DNA of 64,000 nt from Dendrobates tinctorius (Eukaryota). The translations under genes and the position numbers were made by a program. Within the stretch, counting starts at the first letter, position 1, and the number at the start of each line of letters is the position of its first letter. Of the stretch, positions 9,668 through 53,200 are shown in pieces. The DNA lies in contig NW_027361827.1 in the NCBI RefSeq assembly GCF_039654945.1, positions 28,458,001 to 28,522,000 of the forward strand. The letters are read 5' to 3'. The notes below the pieces were generated by a model, which was not told the origin of the DNA, made no database searches, and was given only the letters and a program-made list of their open reading frames with translations.

Positions 9668-10850
9668 CTTTTGACATTTCTTGCAAGCCCCAATTCACTG
9701 TCAACTTTGGATAATCTGATTTGTGCCCTGCAAGTTCTGCAGACAGCATTATATTCTTCTTTAGATATGCCTCCCTCTTTCCATTTTATAAACATTTCTT
9801 TCTTCCTTTATAGCATTTGCTTAAGTTCTGTGTTCATCCATCCTGGTTTCCTTAAATGCTTCCTATTCTTCCCTCTTTTCAGAATTGCTAACAATTGTGC
9901 TTTGAGATTTTCATTTTTCAAGATTTCCCATCCTTCCTGGACATTTTTGTCCTTAAGGATATCCAACCATTGGATCCCTCCAATTCTCTTTCTGAATCCC
10001 TTAAAATCTGCCTTTCTGAAATCTAACCTTGACGTCTGAGTCTTCACAGGTCTTCCTTCTCTAGTTATCCAAAATTCTAAAATAGCATGGTCGCCACCTC
10101 CTAGGGTCCCAGCCACTTTCACGTCCTCAACCAATTCCTCCCTGTTTATAAGGATTAGATCCAAGGTAGCAGTTCCCCTTGTTTTCTTCCCTACCTTTTG
10201 GAAGATAAAGTTGTCAGCAAGAGAGGATAAGAATATCCTTGACCTGTTAGTTTTGCCTGAGAGAGATTCCCAACAAATGTCAGGATAGTTGAAATCTCCC
10301 ATGACAATTATGTTATATTTTTTGGAGAACTTGGCCATTTGATGCATAAAGAGTTCATCCATATCTTCAGCTTGCACAGGCGGCCTGTAGTAAATGCCTA
10401 CAATGGTGTCCTTTCCGTTGTTCTGTCCTTGTATTCTTACCCAAACAGTTTCCACAGAACTCCCAGTCTCTGAAGCTTCAATCTCTGTGCAGATATACGT
10501 GTTTCTAACATACAATGCGACACCTCCTCCTCGTTTATCAAGTCTGTTTTTTGCAAATAAGTTGTATCCTTCTAGTCTTGTATTCCAATCATGTGTATTG
10601 TCCCACCAAGTTTCAGTGATTCCAATGACATCATATTTCTTTTCCTGTGTTAGTAGTTCCAATTCTCCTTGTTTGTTGCCCATGCTTTGTGCATTAGTAT
10701 AGAAACATTTTAGTACGTGATTGATTTCTCTGTCTCCAATATTTTTATTAATTAGATTCTTTTGTCTTTGTTCTTCCCTTCCACTTCTGATAGCAGAATT
10801 CTCAATAGCATTTGTCAGGTGTATGGCTTTTTCTGGCCTTTTGCTTCCCT
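9668..10850 (-). mobile_element. CR1-clade LINE fragment, ORF2 AP-endonuclease domain (ORF 9808-10683), cut by hAT copy A
   Basis: Motifs YTNAQSMGNKQGELE, YDVIGITETWWD, RGGGVALYV, VGIYYRPP, VMGDFNYPDICW, TRGTATLDLIL and GGGDH. Confidence 0.93.
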
Positions 10851-11269: not shown

Positions 11270-12169
11270 AGGCTATGTGCCCATGTAGCGATTTAATCCG
11301 GACTCCTTCCCAGAAATCGCACTTTTTTTTCTGCGCGATTTCACCGCGATTATGTTTGCGATTTTGCCGCGATTTTCGCGTGCGATATTCAAGCACTTTG
11401 AAGCATCGCTTGGAAAGTGATTGACAGGTTGGTCACACTCGTCAAACATAGTGTTTGACAAGTGTGACCAGATTTTTACTATTGAGGCTGCCTATGCGGC
11501 ATCAATAGTAAAAGATAGAATGTTAAAAATGATAAAAAAATAAAAAATCGTGGTATATTTACCTTCCGACGTCCCGCGCAGTCTCAGCGACGCTCCCGTT
11601 CCCAGCGATGCCTTGCGAGACCTGTGATGATGTTGGTCTCGCGTTGCTATAGCGATCTCACGGGACCGCTAAAGTCACGCAAGACTACGTCATCACAGGA
11701 CCTTGCCGCAAGGCATTACTGGGAACACTGAGGCCGGGAAGGCAGCGCGGGACGTCGGAAGGTAAATATACCCCGATTTTTTATTCTTTTTTTTACACGG
11801 CTATGGTACCCAGGGCCTGGAGGACAGTCTCCTCTCCTCCACACCGTGGGTACCAACCGCACATGAGACGCTTAACTTCCCGCATGGTGGGCATAGCCAC
11901 ATGCGGGAAGTAAGCGATTCTCATGTATTCCTATGGGTGCGGAATCGCGGCAATTCTTTGCGATTCTGCACAAAAGAATGAGCTGCTGCGATTTTTTCCG
12001 CGATGCGATTCCGCCATGGAAAAAAGCGCAGCATTAGCACAGCATGTGCGGAATGCCATAGGAATGCATGGGGTGAGTTCTGTACACGATTTTTAAACGT
12101 TTTCACAGCATTTTCACGCCGAAAATCGCAGCAAAAACGCTTAAAAATCGCATCGTGGGCACACAGCCT
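11270..12169. mobile_element. T2/Kolobok-type MITE
   Basis: Termini AGGCTATGTGCCCA...TGGGCACACAGCCT in a TTA(A)-like context. Contains the internal hairpin GGTCACACTCGTCAAACA...TGTTTGACAAGTGTGACC. A reversed relative lies at 62810-63755. Confidence 0.8.
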
Positions 12170-14172
12170 TACAGGAGTTTTACAAAGCCACAAATCAGAA
12201 GTATTTTTGGCTATCTTCAGATATCCTAGGCATTTAATGTTTCAATGTAGCTTAAAGTAATTAAAACACCTCTTACTTCTACCAGTGAATAGTTTTCAAT
12301 GGTGAACATGGTAGGTCAGTGCAGGACAAAGCTGTTTCAAACAGTGGATCAGCTAAGTCTATTCTCATGTCCTCACTATATGAAAACTCTCTCATTAGTT
12401 AACATAAACAAAATTAGGCTAGAGCAGACGTTAAGAACTGACATTTTGAATCATTTATCTATTGAATCATTGAACAAGCTCTGGATATTTGCGTTAGTTC
12501 CATAATAGGTTTTGGCAAATGAATAACCCTATGGGCTCAGTTATGGGAATAGGAAGAGACTAGTTGAAACCTCCGGCAATCTGACTATGTGAACTAGATA
12601 AGACATTATCTCACTTGATTGGCTGTTACCAAATCAGTGACATAAAACAAGCCCTTGGAGATGAGATGCTTTTCTCCAAATAATAGTTTGCATTAAGGTG
12701 ATTCATGTGTGATACTATTCGTTTTAAGACAATTTTGTTTCTGTGTTCAGTATTGTGAACTAATGAGGGGAAGGATGAATGTATCAGGGGTCCATGGTGA
12801 GTTGTGCTATGCATGTATCATAGCATTATCACATAGCCTGTTCTATTTGCTTGTTCACAAATGTAACCAAATGCAAATATCCCATCCATTATAGTCACAT
12901 TTTTATATAACACAATGCCCGCTCCAGGGTACACATAGCTATTAGGCTCAATAAACCATGTATGTTTTCTCTTGTTTTGCTAAATGACACTTGAGCCCTA
13001 GGGTAAAAAAGGCAGGAACAGTTCCACAAAAATGCACAGTTTATAATGTGGTTTATATTTTTCTATTGATACTAGTATATCAAGACTCAGCACATACATG
13101 CTGCACGCTACACAGGGACTGCTTTTAAAATATTTTAAAAAATGCAAAAATTGTATACGCCTTTTAGACCACCCATAGTAAGGTTTATGAGTGTGTACAT
13201 AATATATCGAATTATAAGAGTGACTAGATAATACAGTATATCATAATATAAGAAATACAATAACTAAGAAATCAAATTTTTTTAAATATAAAAATAATGG
13301 TATATCCAAAAAATGCAAATATTAAGCAATGAACAAGAGACAAAATCAAAGTGCAATGTGAATAATTACTAACAGTGAAAAAGCTAATTTCTGAATTACC
13401 ATGTGGAATTGAGTTTCCCCACCTTTTACTATAAGATCGGTATCATCAGGGTCATATTTTCTATTGACCTGGCAACTGGCTGTAAAGTTTTCTTGCCCTA
13501 ACTAATGAGCCAAAGAAATGAGAGGATAAATGATTGTGCCGTACCAGCCTAAAAATATTCTTCCAACATGTCAGAGTGATGTGTCAGAACAGGTTATTGG
13601 TAGGGTTTATAATCAGGGAGTTAAGACGCTAAATACCTATGAGATGCTCTAAACGTTGGAAGTCTGAAATGTTCAGACATTATACTTCACTACAATGAAG
13701 AGAGAAAGAGAACAAAGAGAAATAGATCAACATTGGGTCAGATTTGTTGGCATATGCAACAGAAATGGACTGTACGCTAGCCTGACAGCATATGGCAATA
13801 GTGTAAAGTTATATGTTTGCTGTATTGTGGGGAGGGAAGTTCTCTATTATTGATGTTAGTTTTACTTTCGTTTTTGACTGTGTTATGCCAGCAGCACGGG
13901 CTGTGTGCTTCTGAATTCATATCTCATGTTTACCCATAAGAAGTAAATGCTGTTTACTCAAGATAACTTGCTCTGTGAAGTTCTCTCCTGTGTACCGGTG
14001 GATTCTCAAAAGATACACTCTGCTACAAGACTCACTAAGCTAAATACTATGCAAATTGCCTCTACAGAAAGAAAGAGGACTTTTACTCTACAGCGCCACC
14101 TATTGGTAGTAGCGATCCTACAAGTCACAATCAACCCTTTAACGAGTCTTGTAGTATGACTTAGGATACAAG

Positions 14173-14252
14173 CCAAATCAGAATCTCAATTTGCAGACAC
14201 GGTGTTTCGAGCTGTTGGCTCTCGTCAGTGCAAAGTATGCGATCTGATTTGG
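14173..14252 (-). ncRNA. Type I hammerhead ribozyme, unit 1 (intact core; predicted cleavage between 14196 and 14195)
   Basis: Minus strand reads UUUGCA-CUGACGA-GAGC-caaca-GCUC-GAAACACcGUGUC^-UGCAAA. Stem I is extended by CCAAAUCAGA...UCUGAUUUGG with an internal loop. Confidence 0.92.
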
Positions 14253-14503
14253 CAAGGTGCGAGGCTCTGGACTAGGGTCTAAGAAGTAAGGTTTCTCCTT
14301 GCAGAGAGTGACATGCCAGCTGTGGCTTGTCAAGGTAAGGAGACTTATTCGCCGTGCAATGCTCCTCTGGGAAAATAATATGCAAATTGCCTCTTCAGAA
14401 AGAAAGAGGACTTTTACTCTACAGCGCCACCTATTGGTAGTAGCGATCCTACAAGTCACAATCAACCCTTTAACGAGTCTTGTAGTATGACTTAGGATAC
14501 AAG

Positions 14504-14583
14504 CCAAATCAGAATCTCAATTTGCAGACACGGTGTTTCGAGCTGTTGGCTCTTGTCAGTGCAAAGTATGAGATCTGATTTGG
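14504..14583 (-). ncRNA. Type I hammerhead ribozyme, unit 2 (core CUGACAA, G8->A variant)
   Basis: Same fold as unit 1, but a plus-strand C->T at 14554 changes CUGACGA to CUGACAA. Confidence 0.85.
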
Positions 14584-14834
14584 CAAGGTGAGAGGCTCTG
14601 GACTAGGGTCTAAGAAGTAAGGTTTCTCCTTGTGGAGAGTGACATGCCAGCTGTGGCTTGTCAAGGTAAGGAGACTTATTCGCCGTGCAATGCTCCTCTG
14701 GGAAAATAATATGCAAATTGCCTCTTCAGAAAGAAAGAGGACTTTTACTCTACAGCGCCACCTATTGGTAGTAGCGATCCTACAAGTCACAATCAACCCT
14801 TTAACGAGTCTTGTAGTATGACTTAGGATACAAG

Positions 14835-14914
14835 CCAAATCAGAATCTCAATTTGCAGACACTGTGTTTCGAGCTGTTGGCTCTCGTCAGTGCAAAGTAT
14901 GAGATCTGATTTGG
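14835..14914 (-). ncRNA. Type I hammerhead ribozyme, unit 3 (intact core)
   Basis: Minus strand reads UUUGCA-CUGACGA-GAGC-caaca-GCUC-GAAACACaGUGUC^-UGCAAA. Confidence 0.92.
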
Positions 14915-15197
14915 CAAGGTGAGAGGCTCTGGACTAGGGTCTAAGAAGTAAGGTTTCTCCTTGTGGAGAGTGACATGCCAGCTGTGGCTTGTCAAGGTAA
15001 GGAGACTTATTCGCCGTGCAATGATCCTCTGGGAAAATAATATGCAAATTGCCTAAATAAGCTAAATACGACAGAATTTTGGCTATATTTGTACCAAAAA
15101 CTATTCTATGTGGCTTGTACGAATTTTTCACTTTTTTGAAAAAAGGACATGGTCTGAGATACTACACTGTGTGCAAAATTTAGCACATATATCTCTT

Positions 15198-25494: not shown

Positions 25495-25599
25495 GTGAGA
25501 ACGGCTGGCGAGCTGTTAAGCAAGCTACAGCACCTGTGGTTTGCACACGTAAGTTTTTCATTTTTTCAGGAATGACGGTTAGGCCTAATTCCGGAACTG

Positions 25600-26110
25600 C
25601 GGTTGACCTGCACTTACTGGGAAATCATTGTTCGCGGGTAATAATTGTAATCAGTGATCCCCATCACTAACATTGTTCAGCGGGTTATCTGGACCTGTAA
25701 GCGACAAACGCTGGCTTTTTCAGTGTAGCGCACATGCAGCCACGGACATGTAAGAGCATGACAACCAGTTATTGGCCAATCTCATGTGCCAGAGCCTCAC
25801 GTGTCCCTCTAGTAAGCCGGACTCGGACCGCGGGGCATGACGGAGTCTCATTCGTTAACGGAATTAAGCTTGCAATGTGTGCATCTGTTCTGTAGCTGGC
25901 ATGGTTGAGGTTTCCCAGGTGGAGTCGAATTTAACCGTAGGCTCCACTCCTGGTGGTGCCCTTCTGGACATTCCTTTAAGGTTCAGCTTTGCAACCATAC
26001 TGCCCACGTAAAACAAACACTTTGCCTTCATGAACGCTGTTTGGAGGGTCATGACTCGTGGGAATAACGCCGCCCAATCAGTTAACCTGTTAGACAGATC
26101 GATGGTTGCT
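25600..26110 (-). pseudogene. Diverged 18S rRNA fragment (3' half, with an internal deletion) inside hAT copy B
   Basis: The minus strand carries SSU landmarks in the correct order: GCGGCGTTATTCCCA; AGTATGGTTGCAAAGCTGAAcCTTAAAGGAAT; GAAGGGCACCACCAGGAGTGGAGCCT; TTAATTCCGtTAACGAAtGAGACTC; TAGAGGGACA; GCGCTACACTGA; GTGATGGGGATC; TTCCCAGTAAGTGC. Confidence 0.9.
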
Positions 26111-39722: not shown

Positions 39723-41663
39723 GGAGAAAATCATATAAGAAAAAATGTACTTGGAGAACCATATTGTGCCAAGTCGCACAGGGGAAGGGGGTGTTCACTT
39801 TGCTCAACTCGGGGGAGGAGAAGGAAGGACCCAGCAGGGATCGGCTCTCTGGAGCCACCACTTATCTCATGTCAGTCAGGGAACTGCACCAAGGGCAAAT
39901 AGTTGCTGGAAAGGCTTCCCTGATTGGTACAAACAATTGAGGCACTCCCAGTGAGGGGGGACATACATCACCAGACAAGGCAGGGGATACATATGAACCT
40001 CCCAGCTGTCACTGTCAGAGTTCCGCACTAACAGTACGGTATGCTGCCACCAGTTCCTCGTTCAACATAAGCCCTGTCCGACAACATGCTTTTATCAGGT
40101 CAGAAACCAACCCGGGTAGCATATAATATAACCAACTGAGCGTGCGGACGTGGGGATTCGTGTATCGAAATAAAAGCGCAGCCCAAGATTCATTATATAT
40201 TTAATCACCGAAAAGGTGTACTAGAAATATACAGGTAAATATTTACAAGAACAATATACAGGTATACAGTCAGGAGTGCAGCATAAGGATAGGGTATAGA
40301 TAGGTTGCAATTACTATGTCATGTAGCTTTTTACCACAGGGAGGCGCTGATTGATCACAGGTCCAAATCTTAGTTACATGGTTTTCCTGGCTGCGTCTGG
40401 TAACAGTCCTCCTGCCAGTAGAAAATACTAAGCTCAAAATGAGCAGTTGTCTCTTATCTCCTAGGCAGTTCTCTCCCACACTCTGAACCCACCCCTGGGC
40501 TTGTGCAGCCTCTCTCCTCCCATCTCAGAGTATGATTTTGTGATCAGAACCTTGGAGGCTCATAACTTTCTGCCCGAAGCTCTGAAGGGAATGCCAGTGG
40601 TGCCACTGGATTCTGCTGGATTTTATCTGCACACAGAAACTAAATATGCCTGCCATATGTAATTCCTGGTAGCTATGCTTTATAACTCAATAATGCAGAG
40701 CATTACACGTGGTTGCCGGCAAGGGCATGTGGGGGAAGGAATGCTGATTCCGATTATGTGCTTGGCAAGCCTCAGCGATATTGAATTCTGTTATTATAGG
40801 TCATTTTCCAGATTCAATACCTCAGTGACTTGCTGATACCTTTGGTGCCACAATGTCTCCATGTGCTTGGATCAGACAAAGGGAGCCAGCTGGCTGTAGC
40901 TGCAGGAGAGTTCACACCCTTGTAATAATTATTGGGGACCACAGCTTCAAAGGGCTTGTTCTTGGAGTTAATTAAGGAAAATATTACATTGCCTTTTCTA
41001 GCCAGGGGGAACGCAAGGGTGAGGGCACCTTCCAGGAGTGGATGGAGATGTCCTGAATCTATAATCCAAAATGGATTGTCCCTCGTCCCTCATACCTCCT
41101 TACTTTAGAGGGCGCTAGCGGATATCACATCTCTGTGTTCCACTGCACACCTTTCCACAACCTCCCCTTGCTGGGATATTCCATCAGCATTCCCATGGTC
41201 GTGCCCCCTTTTGTGGCGAATGGTGAAGTGGTATTGCTGGAGCCTGAGGCTCCAGCATAGCAACCTCCTATTCGTCCTTGAGACTGTGTGCAACCAACTG
41301 AGGGGATTGTGGTCCATCTCCATGATGAAAGGGTACCCGTATAAGTAGGGCTGCAGACTCTGCAGTGCCCATACAATTGCCAGGCATTCTTTTTCCATTG
41401 TGGCCACCTCTCTCGGCAATAGCTTCCTGCTCAGGTACAGGGCAGGATGCTCCTGACCGGCTTTGTTGACTTGGCTGAGCACGGCACCAAGGCCTAAGTC
41501 ATTGGCGTCGGTCTGTGCTACAAACGGCGCCGCCAAGACAGCAGCTTTTAGTACTGGGGAGCTGGAGAAAGCAGTCTTGAGCGCCTGAAAAGTGGTCTCG
41601 CAGGAAACAGACCAGTCTAACGCATGAGGCAGCTTTTTCAGGGGCTTGGCCAGGGTACTATAG

Positions 41664-42583
41664 TGTAAGGATTCCGTACTTTCCTTTGTGCCTGTTTGCC
41701 CTGAACCGAGATGGAGTCTCATATCTCACCTTGTCATGGAACTTCCTGTCTGTCCTGATTATTTAAGTTCAGGTCATGTGCTCCTCTGTGCCTGAGTGTT
41801 TTGTTGCTGTTGGCTCCAGAGCTCCTGCCTGTCTGCTGGTTTACTCCCTGCTGCTGCTTGTTACTTGGTGCTCTGCCTTTCCACATTCTGCCGCCTACAG
41901 TCCTCTGTGCATCTCCCTGACGCTGTCTGTGCTTAACTACAGTCTGGACTTCTAGTGTGGAGCTATTCGAGCCTTGAACTGCTGTAGCTAGTAAGGAATC
42001 CTGACATCTCCATTTCCTCTAGGTCTGTGTTTGTTTGGGCTGCGTTGCTGGACTTGTGCGGGACTTTCAGCCCTAAGGGTACTTATAGTGATCTTCTCCT
42101 GTTTATTCCCCTTTTGTATCACGCTGGACTTCTACGTTTAAGTGCCATGTGCTTTTCCACCCTTATGATTGCTGGACTTCTACACTTTAGTTTTGTGTGC
42201 GTGCTCATTCATAACATCACAGGACTGCCTCATTAAATGCAGTGGGCTTACTTTCATGCTTACTGCTGGACTCCTATGTTTAGTGCCCTATGTTTTAGTT
42301 ATAATGTGCACACCTGCATCATATTACTGTTGGACTGGTTCATATTAGCGGTCGCGCCCCGCCCTTCAGTTATTCTGCATCATTCAGTGTGCTGTTTTCA
42401 TTACTATTGCAGGAAGTGCTCTGCTAGTTTTACTTTACTTGCATCATTCTATATTGTGCTGTGTTTTCGTTACTGAAGGAAGAACTCTGGTAGTTGTGTT
42501 ATCCTTGTTAAATATACTTATTTGGTCTCAATCTTGTATTATCCCGTGCAATTAGATGCCATAGTACACTTATAGTTGTTTCA
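41664..42583. mobile_element. Solo LTR (920 bp) inserted in the Gypsy pol gene
   Basis: TG...CA ends with a near-perfect 5-bp TSD TATAG/TGTAG. Removing it rejoins GYYRRFAPHY to STLAKPL. Confidence 0.8.
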
Positions 42584-50242: not shown

Positions 50243-53200
50243 AGGGTAATATACCACTAATAATAATAGGCACTTTATGGTAACCCAGTAATAAAAAACC
50301 GGTACCACATAATGGTATAAATTATTAAAAATTCACATCTTTATTGACATAAAACGCAATACACATGAGTATAAAAAGAAAGGTGTCAGACAATGTACCA
50401 AGGGACTAAAAAAGGTCCCTGGGAAAATCCCATCAGAACAATCCATCAAAGACATAAAAGCACACCCATGTATGAGGTATATAGGGAACAAGGATATAGT
50501 ACCCAATGATAGGAGTGATAAAAAAAAATATATTATTGTCAACTACCGACATATACAAAATCACTCATTTAAAAGTGTCCCTTCTAACATTGTAACTCCT
50601 AAGCGGCACTAACCGCACTATTGATGAGCAACCAACATGGTATAATACCTGAATTATGAGCTGGTGAGAATCCCCGGATGTCCCTGTAGCCCCGACGCAC
50701 GTTTCGCACTGCTTCTTCCGGAGGCGTGTCAAGGCAGGGGGTATGACTAGCTTAAATACTTCACCTAACATCACCATTGGACCATAGACATGTGTCATCT
50801 GCATAACGCTGATGAAATGTTGGGCATGCGCCTGCGCAATACCAAATGGAAGGTCCTATTAATCGCAGTGTACAGGAGGCATAGAACGGCACATGACTGG
50901 TCACAAGGGACACGCCAGCCAATCAGGGGTATATTAAGCGGTCACGTGACTCGGAAACCGCAGGTCCTGTGAGGGACGTGCGGACACCGCAAAACACAAT
51001 AGATCATGGCATAAACCCCAGGCAGTCCTGTGTATTTGCATGCGTTCAGCCTCACAAAATTATTAATGGCACGAACAAGTTAAATCTAAAGGGAATTACC
51101 TAAATATTGGAAAAGGCTATTAAATAAAATAAAATTAATAATGAACCATGTGTAAAGTGCTGTGCACACATAAGCGTCCGTTTGTGTATTATATATAAAA
51201 ATAAGGATAAAGTGCTTAGTGCCTAATATAATCATATAAATATTACAGACATGCAACAATGGTATAATTATTGTAATAATATAAATTTCCGCCTAATCAC
51301 GGTACTCATGACAACATATAAATACCAATATATAAATGTGAAAGTGCATTGTGCAACTGCAAAAATTTGCATAATGTGAATTCAATGTGACTTCCGCCTA
51401 ATCACGGTACTCATATGTGTCATATTCACACAAAAAAGCAATATGCTAATGAAGGCCTTTGTGAGATCATTTGTGATGTAGTGGAATATTTTTTGAAACC
51501 AGTGGTGGCATAACTCCCATCATTTATAAAGGATACTACCGCAGCATTAGGCCATAAGGAGAATTTACATTTAACAGAGGAAATGATTTTAGTCACCGCC
51601 GATGTTGAGGCATTGTATTCTTCTATTGCACATACGAATGGCCTAAAAGCTGTTGAAAAATATTTACGACAGAGTAATTTAAGCAATGAGATGGCATCTT
51701 TTATCTTAACATTATTGAGATTCATTTTGACTCACAATGCCTTTATCTTTAATGGAAGAGTATTTTTGCAACAGAGGGGTACTGCAAAGGGGGCTTTCTG
51801 TGCCCACTCTTATGCAAATTTATTCATGGGGTCATGGGAGTGGTCAATTTTTCAGGAGGAGGACATCATCAATGTTGACCGGGTCCACAACTGGATCCGT
51901 TATATTGATGACATTTTGTTCATTTGGGAGGGTCCAGTTTTGGCCCTGGAGATGATCATGAATCATCTTAATGTCAACAATCAGAATATTAAATTGACTT
52001 ATAAATTCGGACGCCAAATCGATTTTTTGGATTTGTCAATTGTAGTGCTTCCAAATGGTCGTCTTTCTACATCTATTTACCGAAAACCGACTTCCACTAA
52101 TTCATTTCTGCATGCTTCATCATCTCACCCAAAATCAACGATATCCGGTATTCCGATCGGACAATTTTTACATGCCAAAAGGATTTGTTCAGAAGAATCA
52201 CAATTTGAGGAACAATCAAATATTCTAAAAAAAATGTTTTAAGGATAGAGGCTATGGTCGTCGTGTCATCCAAAGGGGTTATAGGCGAGCTAAAAATACG
52301 CCAAGGGATCAACTTCTACACAAAAATTTACCTATCCCGTCCTTGGAAGATGGTGAAAAACAGGTAAGGTTTATCACGAATTATAATAGTAGATGGTTGG
52401 ATCTCAAAAAGATTTTTGAGAAACTTTGGGGAATTCTCCTCACTGACCCAATTCCTAAACATTGTTTACTGTCCTCTCCTCAGTTTGTAGCCAGAAGGGC
52501 TCCAAACTTACGAGATATGTTGGTCCACAGTTCCGGAAAGGAAGGGCTTTTTTCCCTGCGGCTTTTGCAAAGGTTGTGCCAATATGAGGAGGGCATTTTA
52601 CTTCCATAATTTTGATCAGTCAAGAAGGTTTGACATTAGAACACGCATTACGTGCTTATCCAAACGTGTAGTATACTATGCGGAATGCCCCTGTGGAAAA
52701 ATTTACATAGGCATGACAAGCCGTGAACTCAGGGTGACGGTACGGGAACATTGTCTGGACATTGACAAAGCTAAGGCCATAATGGACATTACAACCTTAA
52801 AAATCCTTCCTAGACATTTTAGGAAATATCATGAATGTAATTCCAGGCTTCTTTCTGTCAAGGGAATAGATATTGTTGATTTGGGACCAGGAGGGGGGGA
52901 TTTATCCAAAATATTGGCCAAAAAGGAGTGCCAATGGATTTACAGATTGGGGACTCTTAATCCCCAAGGGTTAAATGAGAGCTCAGGATTTAGCGCATAT
53001 CTTTAATAGCCTTAGAAGTGTGGGTGGGGGGTTTCATTTAATTTTATTTTACATCACTCATTTTTTTTATTTTAATTGTTTTTATTGTTCATTACAGTTA
53101 TATCTGCCACGATGGTTGTATGTTGGTTGTTTATTATACGTTGCCTTTTGGAGGGTAATATACCACTGATAATAATAGTCACTTTATGGTAACCCAGTAA

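Follow-up and report, generated by a model that had tools for sequence, protein, structure and literature searches.

How does a tandem array of hammerhead-bearing units that encodes no protein come to lie at this site in a frog genome? The question is raised by positions 14048–15057 of a 64,000-nucleotide (nt) stretch of Dendrobates tinctorius DNA (NCBI RefSeq assembly GCF_039654945.1, contig NW_027361827.1, positions 28,458,001 to 28,522,000), hereafter called the window. The original prediction, made from the letters alone, described three near-identical 331-bp units here, each with a type I hammerhead ribozyme on the minus strand, and proposed a viroid-like mobile element resembling amphibian satellite 2. 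We consider it highly probable that the array is a single insertion of a non-autonomous, non-coding metazoan retrozyme of the kind without long terminal repeats (non-LTR), the class of satellite 2.

A three-unit insertion with a target-site duplication

Tandem Repeats Finder placed the array at 14042–15054, with a period of 331 nt, 3.1 copies and 98% matches, in a region without any N. The units are 98–99% identical and differ pairwise at three to eight positions, which bears out the predicted near-identity. No further copy of the 331-nt unit was found elsewhere in the window. An exact 12-nt direct repeat occurs at both insert junctions and directly adjoins 14048–15057 (Table 1). The repeat finder stretches this target-site duplication to 17 nt with two mismatches, an extension that may be chance. 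The three extra A at 15055–15057 are either an untemplated addition or a piece of a longer, imperfect duplication.

The G+C content of the units is 0.447–0.456 and no ATG-started open reading frame (ORF) lies inside them. No LTR was found, the insert being made of units alone; no search of its own was made for a primer-binding site (PBS) or a polypurine tract (PPT). Metazoan non-LTR retrozymes are tandem units of 170–400 nt, each with a type I hammerhead and no ORF, LTR, PBS or PPT (Cervera & de la Pena 2020, PMC7229834). They have a G+C content below 50%, a target-site duplication of more than 4 bp and high abundance (PMC7229834). Given its exact duplication, its lack of an ATG-started ORF, its G+C content of 0.45 and the absence of LTRs, the insert fits this published definition, and it also shares the tandem units, type I hammerheads, abundance and amphibian host of these elements. 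The proposed protein-free mobile element of the satellite 2 or non-LTR retrozyme kind is thus upheld by its tandem, non-coding units, its hammerheads and the 12-nt duplication. It departs from the published description in that this copy does not have two consecutive intact hammerheads.

The differences among the units bear on how the array reached three copies. Conceivably, the insertion brought in just one or two units, and unequal exchange or replication slippage later enlarged the array on site, in which case the trimer says nothing about multimeric complementary DNA (cDNA). Such growth agrees with the closeness of units 2 and 3, which differ at just three sites, while unit 1 differs from them at six or seven within the element. 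It also agrees with positions 14302–14303, where unit 1 has CA and the other two units have TG, if these are two decay products of one CG and units 2 and 3 share theirs. Local amplification of retrozyme arrays has moreover been proposed in a 2026 preprint (Li, Clavereau & Pollet 2026, 10.64898/2026.07.22.740005). However, the 14-nt partial unit and the exact duplication fit a single cDNA equally well, and the private substitutions (five in unit 1, one in unit 2 and two in unit 3) are not significantly uneven. We regard growth in place as improbable. The uneven differences lean slightly, though not significantly, away from the copying of a single identical circle. Rolling-circle copying, copying of a linear multimer and later local duplication could each have given the trimer, and we cannot decide among them.

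Independently of this, a rare change of TGAGA to TGCGA occurs at two places in unit 1 that lie 20 nt apart (14240 and 14260). Both changes create CpGs, and they make up <0.1% of depth in the rest of the family.

Table 1. Coordinates of the insertion, its ribozymes and other features of the window
Feature	Position	Strand	Remarks
Left copy of the target-site duplication, TAAGCTAAATAC	14036..14047	.	
Whole insert: three 331-nt units, 14-nt partial fourth unit and AAA	14048..15057	-	Minus strand is hammerhead-sense RNA
Unit 1	14048..14378	-	Five private substitutions, one weakening distal helix I
Unit 2	14379..14709	-	Hammerhead core mutated, G8 to A (plus-strand T at 14554), a CpG transition
Unit 3	14710..15040	-	Helix III central base C to A (plus-strand T at 14863), a common family variant
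Terminal redundancy, initial 14 nt of a fourth unit, TATGCAAATTGCCT	15041..15054	-	
Three extra A	15055..15057	.	Between the element and the right duplication copy
Right copy of the target-site duplication, TAAGCTAAATAC	15058..15069	.	
Perfect octamer ATGCAAAT	14049..14056	.	At the extreme element terminus; repeats at 14380, 14711 and 15042
Small hairpin, CCUCUU ... AAGAGG in RNA sense	14071..14092	-	Just upstream of the RNA-sense 3' terminus
Hammerhead a, type I, intact core	14190..14234	-	Predicted cut 14196/14195
Hammerhead b, core CUGACAA	14521..14565	-	27.6 bits, sub-threshold; cut site would be 14527/14526
Hammerhead c, type I, intact core	14852..14896	-	Predicted cut 14858/14857
Extended helix I of hammerhead a	14172..14256	-	6 bp, internal loop UAC/U, 6 bp, one-base bulge, ~10 bp
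Fragment of an apurinic/apyrimidinic endonuclease (APE)-type endonuclease of a long interspersed nuclear element (LINE)	9808..10683	-	
Long palindrome	11524..11800		
Diverged 18S ribosomal RNA fragment	25575..26005	-	95 bits, model positions 1118–1666
LTR-type RNase H fragment	41105..41722	-	
Weak reverse transcriptase match	51583..52242	+	

Ribozyme folds and their conservation

A search with Rfam Hammerhead_1 (RF00163), for which the gathering score is 34 bits, matched the minus strand at 14234–14190 and 14896–14852 with 34.7 bits each (E = 6.4e-05). The predicted type I hammerheads of units 1 and 3 are thus recovered at threshold, and that of unit 2 is recovered below it, with 27.6 bits, because its core reads CUGACAA. 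All motifs that had been listed for the ribozyme lie where they had been placed. These are stem I (UUUGCA/UGCAAA), helix II (GAGC/GCUC) with loop CAACA, GAAA, the helix III strand ACACCGUGU (ACACAGUGU in unit 3) and the GUC triplet that precedes the predicted cut. The core CUGANGA, GAAA, the A15.1-U16.1 pair and a cleavable H17 are complete in units 1 and 3, and helix I is laid out in units 2 and 3 as in hammerhead a. A 25-nt core pattern had three matches in the window and none in 100 shuffles, and no other hammerhead was found elsewhere in the window. The core-pattern scan of viral contigs returned no match. A chance hammerhead-like motif is ruled out by the Rfam score, the shuffles and the covariation described below.

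The change of G8 to A in unit 2 is a plus-strand C-to-T within a CG, and C-to-T is the usual course by which methylated CpGs decay. Catalysis requires G8, the partner of C3. In a Penelope hammerhead, mutants of G8 and of C3 abolish cleavage (PMC11167929). As core position N7 is C in the frog unit, the core itself contains a CpG, and deamination there destroys the catalytic G8, which makes for a simple path to decay. As the middle ribozyme is disabled, cleavage of a transcript spanning the array would be limited to 14858/14857 and 14196/14195 and would release 662 nt. Judging from these cores, we predict that a transcript of this locus now releases a 662-nt RNA at best, and not the 331-nt product that had been expected; any 331-nt monomers would stem from sister copies. 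The 2026 preprint calls a copy 'active' if it has two consecutive complete hammerheads (10.64898/2026.07.22.740005), and because no two consecutive hammerheads are intact here, this copy is not active in that sense.

The fold of helix III suggests how the ribozymes may work. The canonical monomer hammerhead fold has an energy of −5.7 kcal/mol, against −9.1 kcal/mol for the minimum free energy fold, and two copies of ACACCGUGU pair with each other in an 8-bp duplex of −7.4 kcal/mol. By energy calculation, helix III would be too weak within a single hammerhead and stable between two, and the ribozymes would act in pairs, held by this 8-bp duplex. Newt and axolotl hammerheads show poor cleavage as monomers but good cleavage as dimers (PMC7229834; PMC7761336). 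Helix III is weak and palindromic both in satellite 2 and the axolotl Rtz families and in the frog (ACAC-C-GUGU in the frog, ACACGUGU in Ax353), so that the frog ribozyme should likewise act as a dimer. The frog helix III differs from theirs in an extra unpaired central base.

We next examined conservation of the fold. The core-pattern scan of metagenome contigs yielded four loci, which were aligned with the three frog hammerheads and have nothing in common with the frog unit beyond the 37-nt core, stem II and loop 2. In this alignment, pairing across helices II, III and both parts of helix I amounts to 99.2% of cells, compared with just 22–47% for control structures slid by one to three columns. 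Both sides change in nine of 16 pairs, and none of 500 shuffles reaches these values. The helix III pairs are invariant, stems I and II covary, and loop 1 (U-A/G-C opposite U) and loop 2 (CAA-C/U-A) are preserved. Contigs of four runs show, within the frog family, a joint switch of positions 14220 and 14210 (pair 10.2-11.2) from A-U to G-C with similar frequencies, and some sub-families have CUGAUGA with a GGGG/CCCC stem II. Among the variants listed, none with a frequency of at least 10% falls in the catalytic core, which is suggestive only.

These results also bear on whether the array could be an ordinary satellite that spread as DNA, with the hammerhead motif a functionless relic. Newt satellite 2, reportedly described in 1987, was first presented as satellite DNA, and eight of nine Xenopus retrozyme dimers tested in vitro did not cleave. 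Against this reading stand the short, dispersed three-unit array with its exact 12-nt target-site duplication, the covarying stems and the core, which is kept within the family among the variants listed. We find an ordinary satellite very hard to credit.

Three of the metagenome loci, from different metagenomes (L001:1-1230, L002:1-850 and L003:1-1256), represent one family of hammerhead-bearing elements of ~1030–1130 nt that are 78–91% alike, and their ribozyme core, stem II and loop 2 match those of the frog over 27 nt. L001 starts and ends with the same 200 nt, and the L003 element lies at the end of a 7.4-kb contig. The fourth locus (L004:1-1468) has an exact 127-nt terminal repeat, looks like a 1341-nt circle or tandem, and contains internal repeats of ~157 nt and a hammerhead of the frog unit's type with covarying stems I and II.

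The description as viroid-like proved overstated. Compared with shuffles, the predicted circular fold gains only modest stability (z of −2.4 and −3.5), the plus strand does nearly as well (z of −2.0) and 62% of bases are paired; we rejected a rod-like, viroid-type fold on these grounds. The segments that had been cited as self-complementary, ATCCTACAAGTCA at 14115 with TGACTTAGGAT at 14157 and ACAAGCCA at 14168 with TGGCTTGT at 14323, are all present, but pairing of ACAAGCCA with TGGCTTGT is absent from the minimum-energy fold.

Family, relatives and route of insertion

To place the insertion within its family, we took contig depth over one unit and its left flank (879 letters) in public runs assembled to contigs. 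In DNA run X1, the single-copy flank (13500–13739) has a depth of 3.8 and the unit a summed depth of 1.5–5 × 10^5 at a likeness of at least 85%. The unit thus stands at ~10^4–10^5 times the single-copy flank, a rough measure and not a copy number, which indicates a family of the order of 10^4–10^5 unit equivalents. This is a comparable order to the 126,247 hammerheads of the axolotl genome (PMC7229834). The left-adjoining sequence (13740–14047) is itself repeated, with a depth of 5 × 10^3 to 2 × 10^4, and the retrozyme landed inside another repeat. As several contigs join 14374–14378 back to 14048–14050, the family is mostly arranged head to tail. Run X15, of which only contigs were available and whose library type was guessed to be RNA, contains exact pieces of the unit at a depth of 400–500 and nothing of the repeated flank, whereas in the other runs the unit exceeds that flank in depth by a factor of roughly 20–50; this is at most a hint of transcripts.

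Retrozymes occur in all seven amphibians sampled in the 2026 preprint, Xenopus frogs included, with 57 families in Xenopus (10.64898/2026.07.22.740005). This takes away the novelty that had been suggested for a frog element. We found no description of this 331-nt family in the literature on poison-frog hammerheads; the family is a further member of the class known from newts, axolotl and Xenopus. Among the axolotl families, Rtz331 has the same unit length of 331 nt, and both Rtz331 and Rtz353 give circular RNAs (PMC7229834). By eye, the frog unit resembles Ax330 and Ax353 in its core and in its type of helix III, but no relationship is apparent in stems I and II, in loop 2 or in the remainder of the unit. 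Of the proposed resemblance to satellite 2, what holds is architecture, namely unit size and the weak palindromic helix III.

The element terminus offers one more parallel. The octamer ATGCAAAT, retained by four of the five diverged junction variants that contigs show for the family, recalls the promoter of small nuclear RNA (snRNA) type reported for newt satellite 2 (as cited in PMC2220036), though the frog motif is a sequence match only. By contrast, a 2020 review holds that retrozymes seem to be without a promoter of their own (PMC7761336). The hairpin at 14071–14092 falls in a stretch of the unit without a common variant, among the variants listed.

Plant LTR retrozymes and hammerhead viroids are likewise non-coding, carry self-cleaving hammerheads and have been proposed to circularise monomer RNA. 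They differ from the frog element in their type III hammerheads; in addition, plant retrozymes have an LTR, a PBS, a PPT and 4-bp duplications, and viroids lie outside the genome and copy RNA directly into RNA.

Penelope-like elements offer another comparison. Vertebrate retrozymes occur wherever Penelope elements do, and the Xenopus families are sister to the pseudo-LTRs (pLTRs) of Penelope (10.64898/2026.07.22.740005). In vitro, a Penelope-like enzyme nicks AT-rich DNA and starts internally, ~90 nt downstream of the hammerhead cut; ribozyme cleavage is unneeded, and multimeric, unprocessed RNA serves as substrate (PMC11167929). The frog insertion shares with Penelope-like elements (PMC4209133; PMC11167929) the tandem layout, a hammerhead upstream of the putative start of reverse transcription and an AT-rich target. 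Further points in common would be that homology between target and template is unneeded and that uncleaved multimeric RNA is usable as template. In contrast, the frog insert has neither a reverse transcriptase (RT) nor a GIY-YIG ORF, its hammerhead is full-size and canonical rather than minimal, and its start would lie 147 nt past the cut instead of ~90 nt.

Could the array then be a truncated or ORF-less Penelope-like element, a tandem of pLTRs rather than an independent retrozyme family? Since pLTRs bear type I hammerheads and form tandems, and the Xenopus retrozyme families are their sisters (10.64898/2026.07.22.740005), the idea has a basis. Yet no RT or GIY-YIG reading frame lies beside the element or anywhere in the window, and the hammerhead is canonical and full-size, of type I with both loop 1 and loop 2, not the minimal Penelope type (PMC7761336). 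The unit moreover recurs mostly head to tail with itself, with several contig joints going back 325–331. We think such a derivation unlikely and retain an independent non-LTR retrozyme family.

The junctions suggest how this retrozyme copy may have arrived. We infer that multimeric cDNA was copied from hammerhead-sense RNA through target-primed reverse transcription. The left duplication copy ends in AAATA(C), mimicking the unit's own AAATA(A), and this AT-rich target would have primed synthesis at the left end of the insertion; microhomology of this sort is to be expected wherever cDNA synthesis is primed from a nicked target end. Because the AAATA microhomology lies at the left junction, the nicked target end would have been extended there on a template of minus-strand, hammerhead-sense RNA. 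The start site would then lie 147 nt downstream of the ribozyme cut, just ahead of a U-run in the RNA. We considered a plus-strand RNA template and found it unlikely, as the sole A-tail is 3 nt long, too short for the poly(A) of a copy that is ~99% intact. The template may have been a circular monomer copied repeatedly, which is the rolling-circle model of PMC7761336, or an uncleaved linear multimer. The enzyme most likely came from a Penelope-like element; we favour this because the junction anatomy resembles that produced by the Penelope enzyme in vitro and because of the links drawn in the 2026 preprint. Since its insertion, the copy would have gained ~0.8% substitutions, one of them the CpG transition that removed G8 of the middle ribozyme.

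Several observations weigh against this account. The Rfam scores of units 1 and 3 exceed the gathering threshold by only 0.7 bit. The template strand is deduced from 5 nt of microhomology and from the opposite strand having no credible poly(A). No Penelope-like element was found in the window, and the enzymes nearby comprise a LINE endonuclease of APE type together with RNase H and RT fragments of LTR type. The uneven private changes (5, 1 and 2) and the CA/TG at 14302–14303 are as compatible with heterogeneous templates or a subsequent duplication as with rolling-circle copying. In other copies, the loose ends at 14048 are in part diverged junctions between units, and a terminus shared across the family at this position is only suggested. 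Finally, transcription, cleavage and circles of the locus and its family are predictions, given that the label of the 'RNA' run is a guess and the data are contigs.

A bolder proposal concerns the family as a whole, and we hold it tentatively, thinking it more apt to fail than to stand. The junctions of young copies may record how retrozymes move, with a fixed internal start 147 nt past the cut, an AT-rich nick as used by the Penelope enzyme in vitro, and 14048–14195 as a recognition module. This stretch, from the cut to the start site, has the fewest common variants among those listed and holds both the octamer and the hairpin. If the proposal is true, a census of junctions over many copies could tell which enzyme mobilises retrozymes and whether the template is circular. 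The present locus is a clean specimen for such work, being a recent insertion whose junctions are intact and which shows both terminal redundancy and a target-site duplication. Alone it carries little weight, but beside many sister copies it can test the reverse-copying route and the enzyme of protein-free elements.

Other features of the window

Transposons are plentiful in the window, and the surroundings of the insertion showed no host gene. Besides the transposon-related fragments, it contains a diverged piece of 18S ribosomal RNA (Table 1). The long palindrome to the left of the array matches the plant microRNA model MIR839 on both strands, with 84 bits against a gathering score of 200 bits, and is probably an inverted-repeat transposon rather than a microRNA.

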